Assembly: GCF_000150275.1 (NCBI RefSeq)
Contig: NW_002060953.1
Location: 2,332,414-2,396,413, forward strand
Reading direction: 5' to 3'
DNA length: 64,000 nt
Origin: Trichoplax adhaerens
Lineage: Eukaryota; Animalia; Placozoa
Part shown: piece by piece, positions 3,647 to 35,800 of the stretch
How the letters are laid out: the number at the start of each line of letters is the position of its first letter
Numbering within the stretch: the stretch's first letter is position 1
The notes under the pieces: generated by a model
Told to the model about the DNA's origin: nothing
Database searches by the model: none
What the model saw: the letters and a program-made list of their open reading frames with translations, nothing else
Made by a program: the position numbers and the translations under genes

Positions 3647-3840
3647 GATGTTTTTCTGTTGTGTTGGTCCAGTGACTCCAATCAGTTTAAAAAATGAAGC
3701 TAAAAGGTAGCCGAGAGTTAGAATCATTCGAGGGATTTTACTGGAAAGGACTCACGTCTCCGTGTCTCAGTGCGATATGGTCTGGTTTAAGAAAGACAAA
3801 AGGAGGAACGAACGATCGCGAGAGGGTACATTAAATTTAA

Positions 3841-4350
3841 CGTACAGTACAATGTACAGTACATCTCTCTGTACAGTCCAGAGTGTACAGTACTGTACTG
3901 TACAGTACAGTACTGTACAGGAGAAAGTTTGAATTACGGGTTCTCGTGCTTCTACTGAACTGTACACTGTACACTGTACAGTACAGTACAGTGTACAGTA
4001 CAGTACAGTACTACCGTATGCAGCTAGAGGTTTTCATTGTCTGGTCTGGACGTCTGGACCCTGATCCAGTCAGTTGATTGAGCGACCGGGGAAACTGCGC
4101 AAGTCTGGTACAATATTATTACGTCAATGTAACACCATGATAGTATGGTACTGTCCACTGTACTGTACAGTACATCCGATACACGATTTAGGTGAAAACT
4201 GCAATCGTAAAGTACTGTACATGTACTGTATATACTGTAGTGCTGCTTATTAATATTAGATACGTGTACTGGACGTACAGTACAGTACATACAGTGCTGT
4301 ACAGTATTTTACTTCGTGCAAACGGACTTCTATGTACTGTACACTGTACA
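3841..4350. repeat. TACAG/CTGTA/TGTACA simple-sequence island (two sub-blocks, ~3841-4015 and ~4140-4350) between divergent NDK and golgin-45
   Basis: Dense 5-mer (cagta) and 7-mer (tgtacac) units and palindromes such as tgtacagtactgtac. It produces spurious TVLY/STVQY ORFs on both strands. Confidence 0.9.
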
Positions 4351-6428
4351 GTAATGTATTTGGCTATTGGATGGAAATCATAAAGGCAGGAACTCTTCAC
4401 CTCGAACTTCTTATGGTGGAAACTGGATATGCAGTAGTGGAAATATGGCTTGAACGATGCTGTCCTATGCGCCTCAATGTATTTCATGAATGATTAAAAG
4501 ATGGCTTGTGAAAACTCCACATCTTGACACCATCCAGTATCGGTATTGATAAAACAACTAGAAAGTGAGCTAAGATTAGGATTGATTCCTTGCTTTGTTT
4601 GTCTATTTCTTATGCTGACTCTACGATAGCAATTTGGATCAACTAGAGCCTCCAGATAGTTTAGTACTTCGATCATAATCACCATTTGGATAATGGCTTT
4701 TGAGACTTATTCTTGAATTGATCCCATTTGTATTTGGTGTTTCTGTTAGACTTATAGTATATAGTAGAGTAGGGATTCATCGGTCATGAGCATGATGATT
4801 TTTGCATTGAAAAGATAGGAGTACACTGTACGAGTGTACGTACGTGTCAACGATGTCGAAATAGACGTGTACTGAAAAGTATCTATAGGAAAGGTTCAAA
4901 AAGCGCTACTTGCTGGCAATTGCAGTACCAATATTACTATTACAATCGTTTCAATTGTATCAGTGGAAGACAACATGGAGGAACAGTGAGCAAAATGATT
5001 GTATGTACAATCCTTTTAAATGAATTTGCTCTACAGGATTTTGCAAATCTCCATTGCTGTAGCATCAGGCCTGATTATGATAATACATCATCGTGAACAT
5101 AAGGATTATTCTGGTGAAGGAAACGCCTTGCAAATGGTTCCCTTTTCGAAGGCCTATATTTTAATAGTACGCTGATAAATGTTTCGAAATCTTATCCCTA
5201 CTCGCTGCTGCAGTGGACGTAATGTTATCCAAATTTGGCAACTGATTGATTGTCAAATGATTATACAGTATAATTAATTTGTACTTCTACAATAATACAA
5301 AACAGATTCTGTCCAATATTTGAGTAGAACTACCGCCTGATTACAAAAGGTTTCTGAAGAAGCAACTTAATAAGATTGCAAAGTAATATCATGGAATGGC
5401 GTAGACCTAAACTGCATTCATTTTACAATGGTAGCCTATTTCTAGTTGTAGTTATAAATTTATAATAATGTTAGTATCGGAGTACCAGTTGTTTACCGAA
5501 TGGTGCATAGGTACTTACTACTTACTAGTTAGAAAGAATCGTATTGGTTTGTGTGCTGCATAGCATGTTATAAACCTGATATAATAGTATGTGTCAGACA
5601 AACTAGAAATAGGTAGAGCATTATGTAACTTGGTCATCGTCGAGTTCACCCATTTTATTAACTGACTATTTCGTATCCTATCTTGTCTTAACCATAAAAA
5701 GTACTCCACTACTATGGCAGCCATTGACTGTATTGCTCTTGTTAATATCATACTACACTTATCCTTAGACATTATTGACAAAATTTAATCACGCTATACT
5801 GTACGTATGGGTATTTTAATTAACACCACCCATCGATGATGCACACGTCTGAACGTCTGAATTTTAATTCAGTTATTCAATACTACCCGGTAGTACTGAC
5901 AGGTCTTAGTACTGTATTGTCTTGTTAATCATAACACGTGAGTGTTGGATTGTAGAATTCGTCAGTAATCAGTCCTTTAAAACTTCTGATATCCTGATTC
6001 TTTTCATTCATTCAGTTCTAGATGTTTTGCAGAAATATCTTATAATCTGCAAGCCAACTGCAGCGACATCATTCTCATTCTCTATGCGATTGTTGTCCTT
6101 CGTTTTTGAAAGTTTACATGTTATAACTCGCCAATTCGATCACACTTTTGTTATTAGTAACATGAAGTACTGGTCTGATAGCAACTTATTCTACCTTAAA
6201 ATTTATTCCTGAAGGTCAAAATCTTCACTCAATTCGACTTTTGCTAAATATTTTGGCGAGATAAATCATGCGTAAGTCATAAAAGTAGTTTGTCCTGTAA
6301 TATCAGACTTAACTAGGTCTTTCTTGATATCCCATGTTCTTTCGCTAGAGTTCACTTTTCATTGTATTTTATAATGAACACACATTTATAATCTTCTTTA
6401 CTTGTAAATGATCATTTAAATATTGAAG

Positions 6429-10159: not shown

Positions 10160-10390
10160 GCTACAGTACAGTAGATCCTCTCAACTGTACAGTATAGTAT
10201 ACTGTACATACAGTACAGTGTACTGTACGTACTATACAGTGTACCGTACTGTACTGTACTGTACAGTATACTCAGTGTACAGTGCACTGTACTGTACGCT
10301 CCGAATCAGATCGACTCATTTCTGGTCAAAGTCATCGAGATTTTTCACAGTACATTGTACAGTACAATACAGTACGGTACTGTACAGTAG
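10160..10390. repeat. TACAG/CTGTA island immediately upstream of RNF7
   Basis: ctacagtacagta..actgtacagtatagtatactgtacatacagtacagtgtactgtac..tacagtacggtactgtacagta, ending ~250 nt before the ATG. Confidence 0.88.
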
Positions 10391-10642
10391 TCCAATGCAT
10401 TACGGTAGTCGGGACCCTGGAAATGAATCCGGCGACGGGTAAGAAGAAGTTTGCCATCTAGATAGAAATTAGAAATTATTATTAATTGCTGAACAACCTT
10501 AGGATATTACTACATAAACATACAAGTATATATCGTTATATATACAGTACAGTAAGCGTACGAGTGCAGTGTGTTTGAAGTTGATAAATGGAAAGATGGT
10601 TAAGTATTCATGTGGTAAAGCCCATTAACAGAAGGTTAAGTG

Positions 10643-20724: not shown

Positions 20725-21790
20725 CGATGTACACTGTACACAGGATACTCTATCGCAGCACTGTACTGCATTCGCATCACTTGTCGTCATAGTAACGAAT
20801 CCGTTATTGCAGTAATAGAGTACTGTACATTGTACAAGTGGACATTGCAGTCCAGTAAGACTAGAGCGCAGTACAGTAAGGTAAAGACATCATGGGTAGG
20901 ATATGATTATTCATAAACTAGTGGCGAATAGGTATACGGTATACTCGTCTTTCGTGAATATTTCGATGGTACAGTATTCCTTTCGTTCCTTCAAAGACTA
21001 TAATGCGTAGACCAATCTTTACAGTCGTTGCATATCATGTCCAATTTTTTCCAAGTTATACTGTATCTACAGAAGGCAATGATTCTACTTCTTTGGTGTT
21101 GAGGAGGATAAGACAATCTTCGACACCGCTGTACCATAGTAGTCCTTCATTTTCCGCAATTTATCAAGAAATATCGTAGATACGTTTCCGTTCATTCAGA
21201 GCTGGTTAGAGGCAAATCAGGGCATGTTATCTAGCCTGCAGTAAAACCTATCGAAGCTGATCAGGCTGATGGATCTAGGAGCTGATCGACATTTGACATG
21301 GTCCAATGTCTACTGTGTACTGTACAGTGTACAGTACAGTTCGCTACCCTACTGTGTTCAGTGTGTGTGCAGTACAGTACAGTACAGTACTGAACATGAC
21401 AGTACTATGAAGTACAAAATCTTTCTAGTCTTACCAGCAAGATTTTACTACAGTGGCCCATGTAAGGTACTGTACATTGTGCAGTACTGTACATACAGTA
21501 TGTACACTGTACAGTACTATGGTGCAGTTTTCGGAAAAAAAAAAAGAAAAACTCTACTCACTGTGCAGTACTGTAACTCTAAGACTGTACAGTACTGTAC
21601 AGTACTGTACAGTGCACAGTACTGTAACTCTATGACTGTACACTGTACACTGTACAGTACAGTACAATACAGCTGTTCATGAACTTCATGGTTTGATACA
21701 GTACAGTATAGCAAAATCACGCAGTTTACAGTACACTGTAGTGTAGTCTCTAGTCGTAGCATACTGTACACTGTACATACAGTATGCTAA
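20725..21790. repeat. TACAG/CTGTA/TGTACA islands between divergent AKAP14 and PSMD1 (weak block ~20725-20880, dense block ~21310-21790)
   Basis: Long runs such as gactgtacagtactgtacagtactgtacagt, plus an internal 26-bp duplication (21566-21591 / 21617-21642). Confidence 0.92.
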
Positions 21791-22052
21791 CCATAGCACA
21801 TCAAATCGTGCAAACCAAAGCGGACTGTAACTATACATTCAACGGTGCTGAAGCAACACGGCGGTCTCCCTACTGACGGTACTGTACTGGAGAACCTTTG
21901 CGAGTTTGCCCTGCAAATTTTCCCACTGCGGTTGGCTTTTCTTCTATTGTGCAATCCGCAACGGTAGCTTGAGTTCATTGACTGGAAGTCTCCTTTCCAT
22001 CCGCCATCCATTTTCTCTGACTGGTCAAGAAATCTCTTCAAGCTTGATAATC

Positions 22053-25000: not shown

Positions 25001-28000
25001 AATGGCTCACACAGCCACTGTTATAGCGAACGCGTTCATGCATTATGGTACCATGTCAGATACATTTTTAAGGTGAACTATAGCTTCTACTTTTAACTCA
25101 GGCGTATGTATTGACTTGCAGAATTCAATATAAAATTGTTTATAATATGATTTAATATCAGAGACAACTTGGATTGGTTGGGTCGTGCGGCAAATTGGGC
25201 CAAGTTTACAGCCACAGCTAGTTTAGGTGTTATTCATAAGGTACAGTATTTTCTTTGTAATTTCCAGCATTACGGTAATTGAAATGGAATTAAAGGCGTT
25301 GTAACATTGATTTCAAATGAAAATTATCAGGGTAACGAAAAGAACTCTATCAAGCTTATGTCACATTATTTACCGAAAGATAACACTTCCAGTAATGGAA
25401 TGCAGTCTGGTGGAGCATTATATGCTTTGGGTGGGTTGCATTGTACTATTCAGCATTCTTTAAGCAAATTTAAATTAATTGTATGGTAGTAATATCCGAC
25501 TTAATAATGACCTTGTTCGGTAAAATTCGTATTTTGATGTTATAGGATTAATTCATGCTAATCACGGTCATGGAATCCTTTCCTACCTTCGTAATCAACT
25601 AAAAGAAGCTGCTAGTCAGGTAAGAGTGATCCTAAGTTACTTATTTTTATCACTGTTATAATTATTACTACATCGTAATGCTTTCATAAATTTTTAATAA
25701 TAAATAGCCAATTCGACATGGTGCTTGCCTAGCGCTCGGTTTGGCTGCATTAGGCACTGCTAATCAAGGTATGTATGTCGTTTATTATTTTGGTCGCGGC
25801 TATATTTGCTAATTTTCATCGTCATGGATTTTATCATACAGATATATATGATGATTTATACGATTGTATGATTCACGATGAAGCCGTAACAGGTAAGTCT
25901 TTATAATGTTATGTACTATCAGTACTGCCCTCATTATCTATGTAACTGGATCACTACTGCGCCATATTTATAATAGGTGAGGCTTCAGGGTTAGCGATGG
26001 GTCTAGTTTTGATTGGGAGGAAATCTCCGGAACCACTGGAAAAGATGATAACGGTACATTGCGTAGAAATTAATATTTTGTCAGATGATGTTAGCTGTGA
26101 CCTAATGGTTTGAAAGACAATACATTACAAGATATTAAAATTTCGCCTTCGTACGCTTGCTTTTAGTACTTGAAAGAAACAGATCATGAAAAAATAGAAA
26201 GGGGCCTAGCGCTGGGGATTGCACTTGTACGCTTAAATATTGGATGTAATTTAGTGATGCACGGTACAAATCTTATGAAATATTGCTTTACAGATTATGT
26301 ACGGTTGTCTAGAAGAGGCTGATATCGTCATTGAAACACTTTGTGGAGATGAGGTATGTCTTGATGTAACAGTATTAAAACTGTGGTATTGTAGATACAA
26401 AAATTATCGTTGTAAAGAAACATTAAACTATAACGCATGAATTACAGAATTCTAATTTGCGTTGCTCCGGAATGTATACTATTGGTATGGCATACTGTGG
26501 TAGTGGGAGCAACAAAGCAATTCGACAGCTATTGAGGGTTGCTGTAAGTATAGTAGCTATTGGTAACAATTTGTTGGTTGCCTATTTATTCTGTTTACCG
26601 CGTTATGTAATTGTTGATATATCGACTAACTGCACATATTGATCTAGCATGTTCTCTGCTGTATTATTGTTCTAGGTTAGCGATGTTAACAGCGATGTTC
26701 GGAGAGCTGCTGTTGTATCTATCGGATTTGTGCTTGTTAGGTTAGCTGTTCGTTTTTAGATTATTAAGTTGCTAGATAACTTTAGCCCCCAATGCTTGCT
26801 CCTATGTAATGTTTTAACAAATTATCTAGATCTCCGGAGCAATGCCCTAGCGTAGTGTCTTTGTTAGCAGAGAGTTACAATCCTCACGTTCGATATGGAG
26901 CGGCTATGGCACTTGGTATATCATGTGCTGGAACTGGTTTGAAGGTACAAAAAATGCTAAAATGTATAAAAATTATGATGTTAGCTTCAACGCATCTTTT
27001 AATTAAATACAGGAGGCTGTAAATATTCTTGAGCCCATGATGCACGATTCCGTAAACTTTGTTCGCCAGGTAATCGTTTGCTGATATTTCATGGCTGTCT
27101 CTGGTTCTGTAGTGAGTAATGATGATTCGTTGTTTTATTAGGGAGCTCTTGTTGCTATTTCGATGGTTCTCATACAGCAAACAGAAGCCACAAATTCTAA
27201 AGTATGTGTAAATAACATACAGATGTCTTATAGGAATAAGTTAATGTTGAATAACTTGTATAAATGACTAGGCTCCAACCGTAAGGGAATACTTTACAAA
27301 AGTCATTGCCGACAAACATGAGGATAGCTTAGCGAAGTTTGGTGCTATTATAGCTCAAGGCATTATTGATGCAGGTTACGCAACAGTAATAATTAAAAAT
27401 AACAGTATTGTTTTTTTTAATTTCTATGATTATAACTATTTTATTCATTCAAACAGGTGGACGTAACGCTACGATATCTCTCCTAACAAGATCTGGGCAT
27501 GTCAGAACTGAGTCTGTAGTTGGGCTCCTGGTTTTTAGTCAGTTCTGGTTTTGGTTCCCGTATTGTCATTTCCTGTCCTTAGCGTTTACACCAGCTACCG
27601 TTATTGCATTAAATTCTAACTTACAGGTAAAAGTGGAAGACCGTAATTTTGGGTTTACAACTAAAGTAACAGGTTAACTTATCCGGTTAATATAGATGCT
27701 TAAAGTCGATTTCAAATCCAATTGTAAGCCTTCCGTGTTTGGTTACATCCCTTATATACAACCATCAAAAGAAAAGCCGAAAGGAAAGGTTCGAATAACT
27801 TAAGTACTTTCATACGGAACAGTATTGCATTTTGTGATGTATTGACTATAAGGAAAACTTCTTTAGATACCTACCGCGATTTTATCGACAACAGCGAAGG
27901 CTTTAGCGAGAGCAAAGAGAGGAGAAGATATCAAAAGTGCAATAAAAAGTGAAAGAAAAACCGAAGAACCCATGGAAGTTGTATGTTTAATACTATTTAA

Positions 28001-28622
28001 TGTTGTTGAAAAAGTTAATGATTAAAAATTGGCCGTATGTAACAATTGTATTTAATACATATTAGGATACGCCATCGAAAACTGAGGCTAAACCCGTAGA
28101 GAAGGAATTAGACTGGGAGTTGTTACCTAATCCAGCACGTGTACTTCCGGCACAGGTTAAAAAAATTGATTAAACATGATGATACTTAAACATTGAGGCC
28201 TATTACACGATCCATTCTTGGAAATTGATCGTAATTTATGTTGTCATTAGTTGAAATACATCGAATTTCCTAAAACTGACCGCTATGCTCCTTTAAAGAA
28301 AGTAAGTATTAAGCATTAGACTGACGTATTGAGCAAACTTTCTTATGCTTGCAAATTTTTAAGAGTTAAATCATTATGCCTGTATCTTATAGAGTAATAA
28401 AGGAGGAATTGTCATGATGAAGGATCTAACACCTGGCGAGAGCCAAGAAACATTAGAACCTTTACCAGGTTTTATTGATATTTTATAAATTTCTGGCGTT
28501 TGTAGATTAGGCTATAAAAGTGTTATCATTTCTTATCATTATCAATAGATGTTAATATTCGTAGTATAGACGAAGAGGAAGAAGCGGAACCACCTGAGCC
28601 TTTTGAATACGAGGAAGATTAA
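22053..28622 (+). CDS. PSMD1: 26S proteasome non-ATPase regulatory subunit 1 (RPN2), highly fragmented into short exons
   Basis: MTLTSA|[20 protein letters not shown]|VYYHLG; [25 protein letters not shown]; PC repeats ([22 protein letters not shown]); [15 protein letters not shown]; C-terminal [14 protein letters not shown]. Confidence 0.98.
23579..23658 (+). other. Non-canonical GC-AG intron in PSMD1
   Basis: Restoring the conserved FKQ|AVGIA peptide requires the junction aagcag|gctagt...aaaccag|gcggtt. Confidence 0.75.
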
Positions 28623-29648
28623 TTTTTTTGAACTTAGTCATCACGTAGAATGGCTGCTAATTTTTGATCGAGGTTGTCAATAAACTTATACTTGTATTTG
28701 TGTAAGTTACTTGCTCGTAGAAGCAAAGTTTGTTTATTAAATTTCTGTATTATTTGCCTTGCTTAGTTTCGAACTGTGACAAATTGATTAAGTTCGAAAT
28801 AAAGGCGATTAGTATTTGCCATATAAAAATAAACAATTTTTCAATTCCCATAACTATGATAGCTTTCTTGTCAAATAAACAATATTGCGTAGCAGATACC
28901 TCAAGATAGTCGATAATGGTCAGTGCTATTATTGATTTATAGAATATAAATACTGCAATTAAACGACCTAACAGTGCATCGCAGCAGGAGAACAATGCAA
29001 GTATTGATAAACAAAATGAAGGATATTAGCAGAAGTTGATGCTACAAAATACTAAATTGTCTAGATAACAGATATGTACCATGACTGAAGACAGTATTTT
29101 ATATTATGAACCCAGCTTCCATCTCAAAATGCATGCTGTAACTTAGAAAAATGAGGAAGCGGATACTGCAACTCTAATTCAGCAAGTTTAGCTACGTCAG
29201 ATTTTCGATTCAACTATTACCTATCAAATAAATCTGAAGTACTGAAACTAGACCTGGTCTGAAACTGAGGATCGCTAGTAGAATAAAAGTAGTAAACTTT
29301 GCGTAATCTGATTAATTAATTATCTACGTAAAGCTATTTTTATCATATCGACTTAGTGTAAGTACTGTAAATCAAATAATTAAAAGTTGCAATCAGTTCC
29401 AGTAGCAAGGTACAGTATATTTCGAAGTCATAATTTAATATACTGCCAGCGATAGTTTCAGATACCCAACAGCTAAATACCTAGTCAAATAAATGGAACT
29501 GACAAGACTAAACTTTAGGAACAATTCGCTCCAAGTCTGAATAATGACTGCTTGTACAGTACAGTACTGCATGGTATCGTGCAACTGTCCATTTTAGTCC
29601 AGGCTTGAAATCCCACTGTTTCAGTCAAATTGAAGGGATTGCACCAGT

Positions 29649-30059
29649 TTATATCGTAGAAATAGTTGGCACATTACCCTTCTTGCCATTCGGATCCGTC
29701 TCTGGATTGTTACTATTAAGACCGAGATAAACTTCTGTTGAAATTTTGGAGTTAATGAGTGCTCCCCAGGTTGCTACCAGGAACGGTACGCAGTAAGTTA
29801 GAGGGATCTTCCAATAAAGATCGTTGGGGAATTGACCGATAAAAATTTTATTCCCAGCATTAATCGAAACTAAAATTGTGCCAACAACAATCGCCGTTAA
29901 GAACGACTTGAGGAGCAATGGTTTGTGCTTGAAAACACAACATCCGCATAGAAACTTGGATCTGCCGTGACTTGCAGTCATTCGAAATATCAACTTGGAA
30001 GATTCGCAGTGGCCACACTGCTCTATCATTAAGATAGGAGTGTTTTCAGCTGAAGTCAT
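29649..30059 (-). CDS. Intronless small two-helix membrane protein resembling the bacterial NrtS nitrate/nitrite transporter family, with an N-terminal CxxC..CxCC module (136 aa from first ATG)
   Basis: Uninterrupted ORF. The core SFLTAIVVGTILVSINAG..LYWKIPLTYCVPFLVATWGAL follows the NrtS pattern as I recall it (A-x-VVG-T/S-IL-xx-IN-x-G .. LTYxVPY/FxVxxxG). This is recognition from memory, not a database result. Confidence 0.75.
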   Translation of the reverse strand: MTSAENTPILMIEQCGHCESSKLIFRMTASHGRSKFLCGCCVFKHKPLLLKSFLTAIVVGTILVSINAGNKIFIGQFPNDLYWKIPLTYCVPFLVATWGALINSKISTEVYLGLNSNNPETDPNGKKGNVPTISTI

Positions 30060-30264
30060 TTTACACCTTCTACCCAATGACTAACGGTTGGACTGTAAAA
30101 TTACGTGGAGGGCATGTTCATCAAGATCTGACCATGAAAATACTTCCACCCTTGCTGAACGTGAAAAATGTTTACATAACACGATCAGCGCTTACTATCG
30201 GTCATGTAATTACATTATAATTTTACGCTAACTGTATTGAAGACTTGAGGATTTTTCTTTCTTT

Positions 30265-30600
30265 TACTGTACTGTATGCAGTATGTAAATTAAAGAGCTG
30301 TAAGATAATCGATAGCAACGCTTACCGTACTGTATAGTACAGTACTGTACACTGAGTGTACAGTACCGTAAAGTACCGTGTTCCACATACTGTACACTGT
30401 ACAGTAGAAGATAGTACAGTACAGTGTATTGTGCAGAAAGACTGTAGTGACGCTTCGTACTGTAGAAGATGTACTGTATAGAACGTGAATCTACAGTCGA
30501 GTGAGTAGACCACACGAGAAAAGCAAAAGTTTGTTGCTTACCCCCTCTCTTATGGTCTATTGTACCGTACAGTACAGTGAAGTTGAGTGAACACTGTAAA
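30265..30600. repeat. TACAG/CTGTA island upstream of the NrtS-like gene and on the 5' side of UNC80
   Basis: gtactgtatagtacagtactgtacactgagtgtacagtac..tactgtacactgtacagta..gtacagtacagtg. Confidence 0.88.
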
Positions 30601-32843
30601 CGGACTACAAAGCTAGAATGCAATCAGAGACTCAGACAACGGAGGAGGAAGGTCTCTGTTGAGTTATACTGTAAGCAAGATCGAAGCGCAGTGCTGTAGT
30701 AAAATTTTGAAGAAATCCATTTTTTGTTTCGTAGTCAGTAGCATAGATTTAAGTCGATTTCATTAAACAATCTATCTGTTTCTTTGTCGTAGATTCTCCT
30801 GCTGCGTACATAAAAGCATAGTATACGAATATTGACATTAATACGTAAATATGAACTGTAGCAAACACTCGTTAGCTCTTTAGCAGTCACTCTCTTTTAA
30901 AATGTTATGTTCGTCCTTGTCAAAAGTCCGATCTGTTATTGTTAAAAACAGAAATCTCTTCAATGAATTTGTGTTTAAGCGTAGATGCGTTGAAATGGAC
31001 TGATGTAAAGGAGTTCAGTACTGAGATCTTAGTGAGTGTTTTCTCGTTTGGTCGCTTGCTGCAGTTACTGCAATGAAATACTCACAGTACAGTACTGTAT
31101 GTACTTAACAAAAAGAATGCAGTAGCTAGTTGCCAAAAACATTCACAAAAGTCAATCTGATACTGTCAGCCTTATCTCCAAGGTTACAAATTTCGATTAT
31201 GATATTGAGAGGTAAAAGAAAAAGCTTTTACTTTTACCTCCATGAATTCAGATTTTCCATTTTTTTTTTGCGCTTAAGGGCTACTGGATCATAATGGTAG
31301 TGTTAGCTGAATTTTATTCTTATCTAAATGCACTTAGTAAGGCTTGCTACCGGCGAACTGGCGTTATCCTAAAATTGCCGCTTCCAGCATGATAATTTAA
31401 TTTAAATTTGTCTTATACAATCATGCATATATCGGACACACGCGTACATATACTATATACGGACGATGCCATCCAGGCTCTCAATTCAAGAACAGCCTAG
31501 CGCAATCAGTCCAATCTGTACGCAATAAAGTTATAGTGATTCACAACAAGAATCTCTGATATACCATCGCAGTTTCTAAAAAATATTGAAAGAGCTGATC
31601 CAATTTCTCGATCCTGACCACTTACAGTATATATATTGAATCGATTATGTTGGACTGCCTGGTTGTTTCAATTTAGGATCATCATAGCGTTGCAAAATGA
31701 GTAGTTACAGACTACAGAAAGGCTGAGAGTGCCATCCTTGAGTAGTTAAATTGCTTCCTAAACATGATTACGTTCTGTCATACCGACTATATGCGTATCA
31801 TTCATTCATGGCAGTGCTGCGGAAATGGCATTAATTTTTACGACCAGTGTCATATTCATAGTTTCTTTCTTTTTGCTATATTCTCGTATTAGGCAATTCT
31901 GCCTGCACGACTAGCGCCTACCTATAACATTAGTAAGCCACTACAATCCGATACTTCATTACTGTAATAAGTCAACGAGGATATACTTTTATATGAGTTC
32001 TATCACCTGCCGGTATAATTTTACAGATTGCATTAATTCATAAATTCAATATTTCTATATGTTATTGAAACATCAGTGATAGTAATTATACGGTATGATC
32101 GAAAATTGAATTGATATGTTAATAAATACAATATTAATCAACTCGGCATAATAAATAAACACAGGTGCGGAAAGATACATCATGTGATTTCGAAGAGAGA
32201 GCCAATGACAACTATTCTTCATCGATTAAGATCGAATAGTCAATAGAAATCTGCCATTGATCACTCGTGATGATAATGGTGGGTATTTGTGATTCTCTAT
32301 TGATCGACACTATGTATTGCGCTTATAACGACAGAAATTAATCCATATCATCTCACTAACGTTGCCAACATTGTCTCTACAATGATCACTAACCAATATG
32401 AAAACGAAGATTGCTTTCAACATAGTCCACTAAACGAAGGTGCGTTTTTATGCGACCCTTCTTCATCTATTCAGTGAACTTTAGATCCAAAATACGATAA
32501 CCTAGTGCAAGACACGTATCATTTTAATCATTGGATAAAATTTTCATGTAGAAAATACGTATGTTGTTGCTATAGAGAGAGCGATTTAGAATATGTATAA
32601 CTAGCCTATGCCTTATCCTCTATAGAACGAAGCAAGGTTAAGCATGACGATAGTGTTCCTGATCTACTAAGCTATTGATTGTGACTCAAATTGAGACAAT
32701 AGAAAGGCAAATAATGGAATATTTTTTTCTTCATAGAAAGTAATAAGTGAAAAGTCAGCTTACATAATAATACTATTTATTTGAATCCAATCTATAGCTT
32801 TAAATCGATAAGAAAGTACAAGGATAAATCGAATCACCTATCA

Positions 32844-35800
32844 ATGGCTGCAAAGGAAGTCAATCATGTTCCTTTGGTCATACAGAATTATTTCTGGAAA
32901 TTACAAAGGTAGGCCTATAAAATAAGCTATCCAACTCTGATTTAAAGTTATCCCTCACACACTTTAAACTTCGGTCTAATTGACTCTTAAATAAACCAAA
33001 TTAGAAAATAGCAAATACAGTGTGATATTGAAGAATACGATAGGAAAATAATTCTCATCGTTAATAAATTGACGATTGCACAGAACAAAGATCATGATTT
33101 TTGCTTAGATTAAGAAGTCAAGTCTCTATCCTAACTCTTGCATTTCATGCTTTACTATTTCGATCATGACTAATAGCGTGATGGTAACCAATAGAATTCA
33201 TTCGGAATGAATTTATATAAAGCAGTCTAGATTACTTATTATCGTGCAAAGACTATGTGAACTTTCATAGTTAGAAACGTCTGAAAATTTACACTCATCA
33301 CAAATAGAATCTGACAGTATCTTCATACTATAATCGAGATTAGACTCTCATTGAGAAAATCTAGGATTCGAAAATTAGTCTCCGAAAGCCAACTGCTAAG
33401 TTAAATCCCTCCATATCGAAATATTTTAAAATGGTTTAATTTAATGACGCTACAATAATTGGCTTATCATTTTTTTATTCTATGTGGAAAAGTGCAAATC
33501 CACTTCAATGTTGATATGACATATTCTTTGAATATCCATTTGTTGGTAACAGCAGCATGTTATACTTTCACTATTTACCTCTGTTCCTGAAATCGACCAA
33601 GTTATAATTGTTAAAACTACTTTAATACTCCTTTAATATTACCGGTAGACCTATTATAGTCGGATAGAACATCTTTAACAAATTGAATTTGGGCGTCATT
33701 TTCTCTATTGACAATCTATATCTTTGTTTTCTACCATCAATGATTCTATGCTCACCTATCATATATCTCTTCAATGGAACGCGATAGCCCATTTATGAGG
33801 CCAAAACTGGGTAAAAACTGTGATGGAATATGCGTGGTAAGTAATTCTCTTACTATTGATATAATATTTTGATGAAAATTGCCAATAAAGGCAATGCTCT
33901 GACTTAAAATAAGTTGTATAAGATGGCAAGTATTCGATCCTTAAAAATTATGAATACTAGACTTTTATTTGATAACATTTTAGTATTCATCACTTAGTTA
34001 TTGAACTCTAATCTATAACTCTAATCTTGGCCCATATACTACTAAAAGAAGACTATAGTAGTCTTTCTCGCCACTCTTGTTTTAATTGTAATACATAATC
34101 TTGATGGATAGTTAAGCAATCCACGAAAAGTAAGTGAATATTCGAGAACATTAATCTGTCTAAGGTACTAACGTAATAGTTATTAGGAAGAATCAAATCT
34201 GGATACCAACTACGACAATAATAATTACCATGCAATAAAATAGGAAAACTAATAATTTTTAATTGTGTGGAAGACTCAAAATAAAATACTCTTAATTTAC
34301 GTTACTGACAGGCAAATATAAATCTAAGCAGTTATCAACAGCATCCTCAGTCTTATTTGTGTTCATGTGACATTATGATACATTCACTATCAAAATCTAC
34401 ATAATTGCAACCATATTAACTATTCTTGAATCATGCTATAATGTCCAAAATTTTAATAGTCACGGATCATATATGCAAGTTAGTGGAATAAAACTACAGC
34501 AGAATTCTAAAAAGCGGCATATTTCACTGATTCCCTCTGTAAAAATTCAAACTTTTATGTCGATAATAATATACTTGAGCGAAAGATAAGCAGTTTAATG
34601 AAAGTTCCGCAACATTCGCTGTGCATTAAATTGCCAACCTTGATGGAAAAATAGTTGCTGCAATAACGTATTGATGTGGAAGTAAAATTCTAATGAATAT
34701 TGCTCTATCGGCATTGCCTGTTCAAGCGCGTATGATTTAGATTTCAAACATCTAGTTTTAAACTCATATGATTTGATTGTTCCATAATAGATATTAGAAA
34801 GAATAATTTGCGAGAATAAAATATGTGGTTTACCAGATGGACTCATCAAGGCAATCTCATCAATATCGAGATGGGATTTTGTGGCGGCCGCTACGCCTCA
34901 TGTTATACGTTGTTGCTCCGCCATGCTAGCGAATCGAAATCAGTTTGATAGAATGAACATCGCTGAAACTAAATTAATGTACACCTTACACTGGATTTTG
35001 CTGGATGCTCGAAGTGAATGCAGTACTGAATGTATTTTATCCATGGAGGTGATCCAATTATTTGTTCAATTAATGGTGCCCCATGCTTACAATCTTAGAG
35101 ATGCGGACTTAACATTTAGACTAGAAAAAGGTATTAGAATTTGGAAAGCGTTGAGACATCATCAAGCACCAGAGGTACCCGCTTTTACCGGCCAGTCTAT
35201 TAATCAGAATCCATTATTACAACATAAAATGGTGACTAATTTTGATACTGCTGTAGTGCGATGTTTAACTTCCTCAAATTGGTCAGAACAAGGTATTACT
35301 TGGGCTATTATTTATTTGCAGCAACAGCTAACCTACTCTATCAATTCAATGTCTCAGCAATTGCTAGCAGATAGTGATAATATTCGAGAAGCGCGCTCAG
35401 CCTCTTGTTCTCGAATGCGCAATACTAAGCGTCATGTCCTTCAACACCAGCAACGAAGTTTAGATCACCGCTCCGGTAAAGAGAATACGCAAACGACCAA
35501 CCTCACATGTAATCCCTTAATGTTACATCAATTAGCCGTGAATGACATTAGCTGTGGAAATAGTGAAGCAGGAAGCAGTAGTGATATCGATGATGTTGAT
35601 TCGGCATCTAAGGAAGCCTATGATCTCTATCGTGCTAATATTTCAAATGCATTCTGCCACATCGTCAGGGGTCGAGCAAACCCTAGATTATGTGATTTAA
35701 TTTGCGCTTATACCTTAACTGTTATAGATTCTAATTTTTTACCCTGGAAGTGCCTAGAACATTATACTAGCCAGGAAAAAGGAAAGCAATTACAGGACAT

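Follow-up and report, generated by a model that had tools for sequence, protein, structure and literature searches.

Background

The nitrate/nitrite transporter NrtS is credited to work by Maeda and colleagues on Synechococcus elongatus PCC 7942 and Synechococcus sp. PCC 7002 (Plant Cell Physiol, 2019), and in that founding study over-expression of the cyanobacterial protein reportedly allowed a transport-null mutant to take up nitrate again. Zinc-ribbon NrtS-like proteins of Chloroflexota, Rokubacteria and Methylomirabilota are annotated either as 'nitrate/nitrite transporter NrtS' or as hypothetical, and no characterised member of this bacterial group was found. Genes of bacterial type have also been noted in the placozoan Trichoplax adhaerens, for which twelve bacterial transfers were proposed, including BPL_N, DapF, MurA, RsmE, PhrB, GNAT and MhpC (Driscoll et al. 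2013, PMC3641634).

The window analysed here, which is the whole stretch of 64 kb of T. adhaerens DNA to which all coordinates refer, contains an NrtS-type gene between two host genes. The best overall explanation, to which we assign a probability of roughly 0.7, is that a bacterial NrtS-family gene was transferred to placozoans and kept, its product forming an oligomeric pathway for small anions; the horizontal transfer and domestication of a bacterial gene, considered separately, are very probable. No earlier report of an NrtS-type gene in placozoans was found in the searchable literature, where the locus tag of the corresponding gene in Trichoplax sp. H2 (TrispH2_006948) appears in no paper, and in the text of a 2026 compendium of metazoan transfers Trichoplax occurs only in the reference list. 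Thus, the gene looks like an unreported case of transfer from a bacterium to an animal.

Genomic location of the gene

The features of the locus are collected in Table 1. The NrtS-family gene is present in a single copy in the genome and encodes a protein of 136 amino acids, longer than the bacterial forms through extensions of its termini. It is arranged tail-to-tail (convergently) with PSMD1, also annotated as RPN2, and head-to-head (divergently) with UNC80. In Trichoplax sp. H2 the ORF product has a counterpart of 99% identity, 'hypothetical protein TrispH2_006948', and in the independent H2 assembly the gene order is UNC80, the NrtS-type gene, RPN2/PSMD1 and AKAP28, with UNC80 annotated by PF15778, PF19424 and PF20262 and RPN2/PSMD1 by PF21505 and PF18004; the neighbours that the initial annotation had named from the letters of the DNA are therefore the annotated ones. 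Over 20.4 kb the window agrees with the H2 assembly at 98.9% identity, and the ORF contains two of the differences. The exact protein is absent from a collection of 15 billion sequences, so the gene is probably missing from the public gene set of the T. adhaerens assembly.

Table 1. Positions of the NrtS-type gene, its parts and the adjacent features in the window
Feature	Position	Strand	Evidence
NrtS-family coding region (intronless; ATG at 30059; 136 codons and stop)	29649..30059	-	ORF list, sequence
5' UTR	30060..30232	-	RNA contig ends at 30174, 30232 and 30254
3' UTR (minimum extent to 29484, maximum to about 29060; overlapping with the 3' end of the convergent gene PSMD1)	29060..29648	-	
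Placozoan-specific N-terminal extension E-x-x-P-I-L, residues 5-10	30030..30047	-	alignments
Four-cysteine zinc-ribbon-like module (C15, C18, C38, C41)	29937..30017	-	conservation, AlphaFold
Predicted membrane helix 1, residues 47-69	29853..29921	-	hydropathy, AlphaFold helix 46-74
Predicted membrane helix 2, residues 84-104	29748..29810	-	hydropathy, AlphaFold helix 81-104
Placozoan-specific C-terminal tail, residues 105-136 (32 residues)	29652..29747	-	alignment
ACAGT/TACAG repeat island	30265..30600	.	motif density; directly upstream of RNA 5' end
PSMD1/RPN2 last exons	27900..28622	+	GT..AG joints in four of four RNA runs, H2 annotation, L002 collinearity
PSMD1 introns in that region	27981-28065, 28154-28248, 28302-28392, 28467-28546	+	
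UNC80 5' exons	32344..33850	+	joints 32437/32796 and 32906/33786; H2 annotation

A genomic contig (L002) from a second placozoan lineage, the third lineage in this comparison after the two assemblies, is collinear with the window from 30026 to 26867 and passes from the gene about 1 kb into the 3' exons and introns of PSMD1, so that the synteny proposed as a check is kept in both L002 and H2. The GC content of the gene is 0.41, close to that of the PSMD1 host exons (0.42), against a median of 0.63 (range 0.53-0.71) for the bacterial homologues. Bacterial contamination or a chimeric assembly might be suspected, as placozoans have bacterial endosymbionts and bacterial DNA was present in the first genome project (PMC3641634), but this is scarcely credible when the same junctions occur in two independent assemblies, the contig of the third lineage runs from the gene into exons and introns of PSMD1, the base composition is that of the host, and RNA contigs of four runs from three studies hold the gene together with host flanks.

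The T. adhaerens gene has a repeat island just upstream, which the initial annotation took as a sign of domestication because native genes carry the same repeat. There are 20 TACAG/CTGTA motifs in 400 bases (bins 30201-30600), and 339 in the whole 64 kb, compared with about 133 by a rough estimate from composition. The island is the known promoter-associated ACAGT microsatellite of Trichoplax, published in 2010, of which 54% of copies lie within 1 kb upstream of genes (PMC2871265). Its position fits, but does not prove, the recruitment of a native promoter element by the NrtS-type gene, and the island was not seen in the 286 bases available upstream of the gene of the second lineage. Thus, the island itself is real, and as evidence of domestication it is circumstantial.

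Four dense islands of these motifs were noted in the window (3801-4400, 10201-10400, 21401-21800 and 30201-30600), of which that at 21401-21800 sits between the starts of AKAP28 and PSMD1, two divergent genes. A large number of partial RNA contigs that derive from other loci accumulate at 30265-30600. Short copies of the ACTGTAC type also flank the gene, at 29553-29572 (about 80-95 bases past the stop codon) and at 30327-30411 (270-350 bases before the ATG); assemblers bridge these copies, which results in spurious joints such as that from 30351 to 29553.

Transcription and selection

Four RNA-derived contig sets from three studies, two of the sets being on record as RNA, were aligned to positions 27900-33850. 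All four splice PSMD1 at GT..AG (four introns), and no fewer than two 5' introns of UNC80 are likewise spliced in the RNA contigs. Over the ORF every set has cover and none has an intron-type joint, in agreement with the intronless coding region first noted and with the transcription that was sought as a check, although the contigs are unstranded. None of the four runs covers 30686-31083 or 31283-32277, and the cover of the ORF is therefore not DNA background. In three of the four runs the contig of the NrtS-type gene is separate from the deeper contig of PSMD1, with depths of 8 versus 196 in run X15 (contig 29484-30174) and of 43 versus 104 in run X4 (contig 29060-30232). The remaining run merges both genes into a single contig, a result to be expected where convergent genes overlap at their 3' ends and the assembly is unstranded; the RNA contigs of PSMD1 end at 28853, 28937 and 29410.

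The X4 contig ends at 30232, where the read-1 adapter follows directly and an A-run is absent, and the mirror image of this geometry is found in X4 at 32374, in the 5' exon of the plus-strand gene UNC80. Together these ends point to a minus-strand RNA starting at about 30232, and are suggestive only, the contigs themselves being unstranded. The 5' UTR carries six short upstream ATGs, which may limit translation.

The ratio dN/dS of the window's gene is 0.07-0.14 in comparison with the two other placozoan lineages, at dS values above 1.3 that are saturated, and 0.25 between those two lineages. The reading frame is intact in all six placozoan sequences. Were the gene a decaying or neutral insert, the RNA over it would be read-through from PSMD1 or noise, and the merged contig of one run, the ORF depth of 4-8 against 196-366 for PSMD1 in two runs and the upstream ATGs could be read in that way. 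This is extremely improbable in view of the low dN/dS at saturated dS, the intact frame in six sequences, the separate contigs in three of four runs, and the X4 contig that ends in adapter just as at the 5' end of UNC80. A real host gene, as proposed at the outset, is thus indicated by its place between host genes in two assemblies and in the contig of the third lineage, by its transcription and by purifying selection.

Both the protein and the coding sequence differ from those of the second lineage by 27-28%, and the mean distance between orthologues of Trichoplax adhaerens and Hoilungia hongkongensis is about 28% (PMC6067683). By this comparison the age of the gene can be bracketed: it predates a split as deep as that between Trichoplax and Hoilungia.

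Several minor observations were made in the RNA contigs. The RNA of 'organism B' (runs X15 and X16) differs from the window at eight places in 29639-30142, four of them in the ORF (three synonymous changes and T108R in the variable tail), and it is without the L112F change of Trichoplax sp. H2; organism B seems to be a further close strain. An A-to-G difference at 29799, present in all four runs, was considered as RNA editing and rejected, as the H2 genome has the same base and the change is synonymous. In run X16 one contig of low depth (5.6) links 29916 and 30060 across opposite strands, probably an assembly artefact. In the 5' region of UNC80, run X4 includes an additional cassette exon, 32624-32704, through the joints 32437/32624 and 32704/32796, and the direct joint 32437/32796 is present in three runs, which looks like alternative splicing of the 5' UTR.

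Protein features and family membership

The protein was examined for membership of the NrtS family, which had been proposed from the ORF translation. It scores 35.6 bits (E = 6.4e-9) with the NCBIfam model NF038050 (NrtS), above the curated cut-off of 25, through a match of residues 55-104 to model positions 5-54 of 56; the NrtS-type assignment is upheld by this score, and NF038050 gives the homologues from Chloroflexota 35-39 bits. Over 14 control genomes, NF038050 gave a score above the cut-off in one and any match in eight, Synechococcus elongatus being among these eight. A Pfam search of the protein returned no family, and among solved structures there was no relative by sequence and no informative Foldseek match.

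The core of the protein is shared with bacteria. The four cysteines C15, C18, C38 and C41 occur in all placozoans and, taken one by one, in 95-99% of 133 bacterial homologues, and the module that they delimit is modelled by AlphaFold as a beta-hairpin at residues 25-37. Hydropathy peaks at 46-75 and 84-103 in a Kyte-Doolittle scan, and both hydrophobic stretches quoted in the initial annotation fall in the predicted membrane helices, which have pLDDT values of 80-84 in a model with a mean of 68. The first helix ends in I-N-A-G in placozoans and in N-Q-G in bacteria, position 68 being Gln in 95% of the bacterial homologues and Ala in placozoans. A loop of 14 residues that ends in an L-Y-W-K turn leads to the second helix, the most conserved part of the family (P-L-T-Y-C-V-P-F ... 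G-A-L). Of the 39 positions conserved at 80% or more in bacteria, 35 are kept in placozoans; the four that changed are R51K, R105K, G75 (Gly or Asn) and Q68A. The predicted topology is a hairpin with N-in and C-in ends and a cytosolic zinc ribbon, on account of the Lys/Arg residues before helix 1 and the cysteine-rich module.

Both termini are peculiar to placozoans. The E-x-x-P-I-L motif is invariant in all six placozoan sequences, is absent from bacteria, and resembles what we take to be an acidic dileucine sorting signal. The C-terminal tail is variable except at its end, G-N-x-[P/R]-T-I-[S/T]-T-[I/L], which is kept in six of six placozoan sequences; the terminal T-I-[S/T]-T-[I/L] is absent from bacteria, all but a few of whose homologues stop soon after helix 2, and presumably resembles a class I PDZ-binding terminus. 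Motifs of these two kinds would be expected of a membrane protein of bacterial descent that has become fitted to trafficking in eukaryotes while its two ends lie in the cytosol.

Relatives and phylogeny

The closest relatives besides that of Trichoplax sp. H2 are full-length proteins with about 72% identity from two further placozoan lineages: P0002, found in four public runs, and P0003, P0269 and P0270, found in a marine metagenome assembly. Of the placozoan sequences among the best 120 matches, that of Trichoplax sp. H2 is named and three others were placed by identity and synteny. The next relatives are bacterial proteins of about 100 residues that are 50-68% identical over the zinc ribbon and both helices (residues 15-105). 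A search of 1.84 billion representative proteins gave 622 matches, of which only the placozoan cluster had an E-value below 1e-30, and a scan of one genome per bacterial or archaeal species found 389 stretches that encode relatives. Among the best 80 of these 389, almost all belong to Chloroflexota (Dehalococcoidia, SAR202, Chloroflexia and Anaerolineae) and the rest to Rokubacteria and Methylomirabilota.

Broad eukaryotic orthologs would have spoken against a bacterial origin, and none were found: no eukaryotic source or name beyond placozoans occurs among the best 120 matches, no other eukaryotic relatives were found in the collections searched, which carry few names, and the nearest Atlas clusters are 97-100% Bacteria. 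Every relative outside placozoans with a readable origin is bacterial, as the proposal of a bacterial origin had anticipated, and P0271, a long-branch neighbour in the tree, sits in a dense bacterial gene context. The viral contigs searched contained no relatives and thus no sign of a viral vector, and JGI metagenomes scanned with the protein and with the placozoan alignment yielded nothing.

A phylogenetic tree of about 104 usable columns unites the placozoan sequences in a single clade (support 100/99), whose stem is long at about 1.1 changes per site. The clade is placed within the bacterial rows at a depth of about ten nodes, of which most are weak, and the rows nearest to it are P0129 and a Dehalococcoidia sequence (L009). 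An AU test of the topology that keeps the main bacterial group together without placozoans did not reject it (p = 0.52, with about 104 columns). The phylogeny suggested in the initial annotation thus recovers the placozoans as a single clade among bacterial rows and leaves their nesting within the bacteria statistically optional at this alignment length. Rooting on homologues that have no zinc ribbon was tried and dropped, as these do not form a group of their own and include many truncated gene calls that begin at the internal Met.

The direction of transfer, from a bacterium to a placozoan, is one that we infer from distribution and not from the tree, because the family occurs in hundreds of bacterial species of several phyla and in one animal phylum; the absence of introns and the shared architecture point in the same direction. 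An ancient eukaryotic gene that descended vertically and was lost in all eukaryotes but placozoans would account for the long stem, and under the AU test the placozoan clade need not fall within the bacterial radiation. Such a history is very improbable, as it requires a very large number of independent losses and is at odds with the bacterial nearest clusters and the lack of any other eukaryotic source among the best 120 matches, with the lack of an intron in an intron-rich genome, with the spread of the family over several bacterial phyla, and with a core identity to bacterial proteins of up to 68%, which is high for a split as old as that of the domains. There is good support for a horizontal transfer to an ancestral placozoan with domestication thereafter. 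In outline, an ancestral placozoan would have acquired a bacterial NrtS-family gene horizontally in its nuclear genome, where it would have been kept since as a working host gene, from a donor that, to judge by its nearest sequences, can only be called Chloroflexota-like.

Predicted function

The gene product is predicted to have a four-cysteine zinc ribbon in the cytosol and, after it, a membrane hairpin of two helices, both ends of the protein facing the cytosol. It most likely assembles as a homo-oligomer, because a protein of two helices cannot form a pathway by itself, and the oligomer would form a small anion pathway, for nitrate and/or nitrite if family membership is a guide. Drawn from that membership alone, nitrate or nitrite as the substrate is a tentative proposal, held at somewhat less than even odds.

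Gene neighbourhoods in bacteria were tallied for 80 loci. In 33 of them the NrtS-like gene has a common PHP/LexA/rpsT/gyrB context, with the order nusA-infB-rbfA-truB, PHP, the NrtS-like gene and then convergent LexA, rpsT and gyrB; these 33 loci (L011, L020, L023 and L032-L086, with L091:5088-9653 as an example) come from a large group of Chloroflexota that includes a SAR202 genome. Among the 25 commonest neighbour families of the 47 loci outside the LexA context there is no nitrate or nitrite reductase or transporter family, and there is none in four bacterial contexts that were checked in full. Eight loci adjoin a CoxM-like flavoprotein. In one small clade the NrtS-like gene adjoins SelB, a SelD-like AIRS protein and a GRDB-like protein, and in an unrelated bacterial lineage it adjoins SelA, an adjacency not seen in the 80 named loci (selenocysteine-pathway neighbours at L088:1-1890, L089:1647-5334, L090:1543-5816 and L094:6398-7765). 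This adjacency to selenium genes, in two lineages only, may hint at a substrate other than nitrate.

A domesticated bacterial gene with some other role, in a pathway for a different small anion or solute or as a zinc-ribbon-regulated membrane subunit, has about the same odds as nitrate or nitrite transport. It would agree with a nitrate link that comes from the family name only, with the lack of any nitrate/nitrite family among the tallied neighbours of the 80 loci, with the housekeeping context of 33 of these, with the selenocysteine-pathway genes that adjoin in two separate lineages, and with Q68A, which alters a residue of 95% conservation at the end of helix 1. Nitrate or nitrite is favoured by the score above the cut-off of the curated NrtS model, by the 35 of 39 conserved core positions that are kept, by the restriction of the selenium adjacency to two lineages, and by a nitrite/nitrate biology of placozoans that is unusually rich (PMC7400543).

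Nitrite in Trichoplax is about 150 uM and depends on NO synthase, of which the animal has three, one with a PDZ domain, and its twelve bacterial-type NIT-domain guanylate cyclases were proposed as sensors of nitrite/nitrate (PMC7400543). A link of the gene to this nitric-oxide/nitrite biology, which we infer, could take the form of a bacterial nitrate/nitrite channel that placozoans have wired into NO/nitrite/nitrate signalling, with the new termini as sorting and PDZ-scaffold signals; this detailed scheme is unlikely as it stands. If it were true, the protein would transport nitrite or nitrate through a membrane of the host and would be the first NrtS-type transporter to work in an animal. 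A six-frame, exon-by-exon search of the window's genome for nitrite/sulfite reductase (PF01077) and molybdopterin oxidoreductase (PF00384) gave no match; this search is regarded as insensitive, having missed the expected 75-kDa subunit of mitochondrial complex I, and nothing is drawn from it.

Comparison with known systems

Well-supported transfers of bacterial membrane-transport genes that are kept across a whole animal phylum are few, and the recipient in this case is one of the earliest-branching animal lineages. Steps of domestication are visible at the locus in host base composition, a native promoter repeat beside the RNA start, and new conserved termini. A system for sensing nitrite/nitrate has been proposed in placozoans (PMC7400543), and if the substrate is one of these ions the gene would give that system a concrete transport step. 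The gene also brings into focus the zinc-ribbon NrtS-like proteins of Chloroflexota, a subfamily that is uncharacterised.

Like the transfers proposed by Driscoll et al. (2013), the NrtS-type gene is a bacterial-type gene on a large scaffold of host genes; it differs from them in that it is not on their list and in that its nearest relatives are Chloroflexota-like, not rickettsial or chlamydial. In comparison with NrtS as modelled by NF038050, the Trichoplax protein is likewise small, has two membrane helices and scores above the model cut-off, but its gene is nuclear and it bears an N-terminal four-cysteine zinc ribbon and extensions found only in placozoans, and it has Ala where 95% of the aligned bacterial homologues have Gln. 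The zinc-ribbon NrtS-like proteins of Chloroflexota, Rokubacteria and Methylomirabilota are the most similar, with the full architecture and 50-68% identity over residues 15-105, and their four cysteines and W-K-I-P-L-T-Y-C-V-P-F core are kept in Trichoplax, whereas the bacterial proteins are about 95-125 residues long, end soon after helix 2, and are encoded by genes of 53-71% GC.
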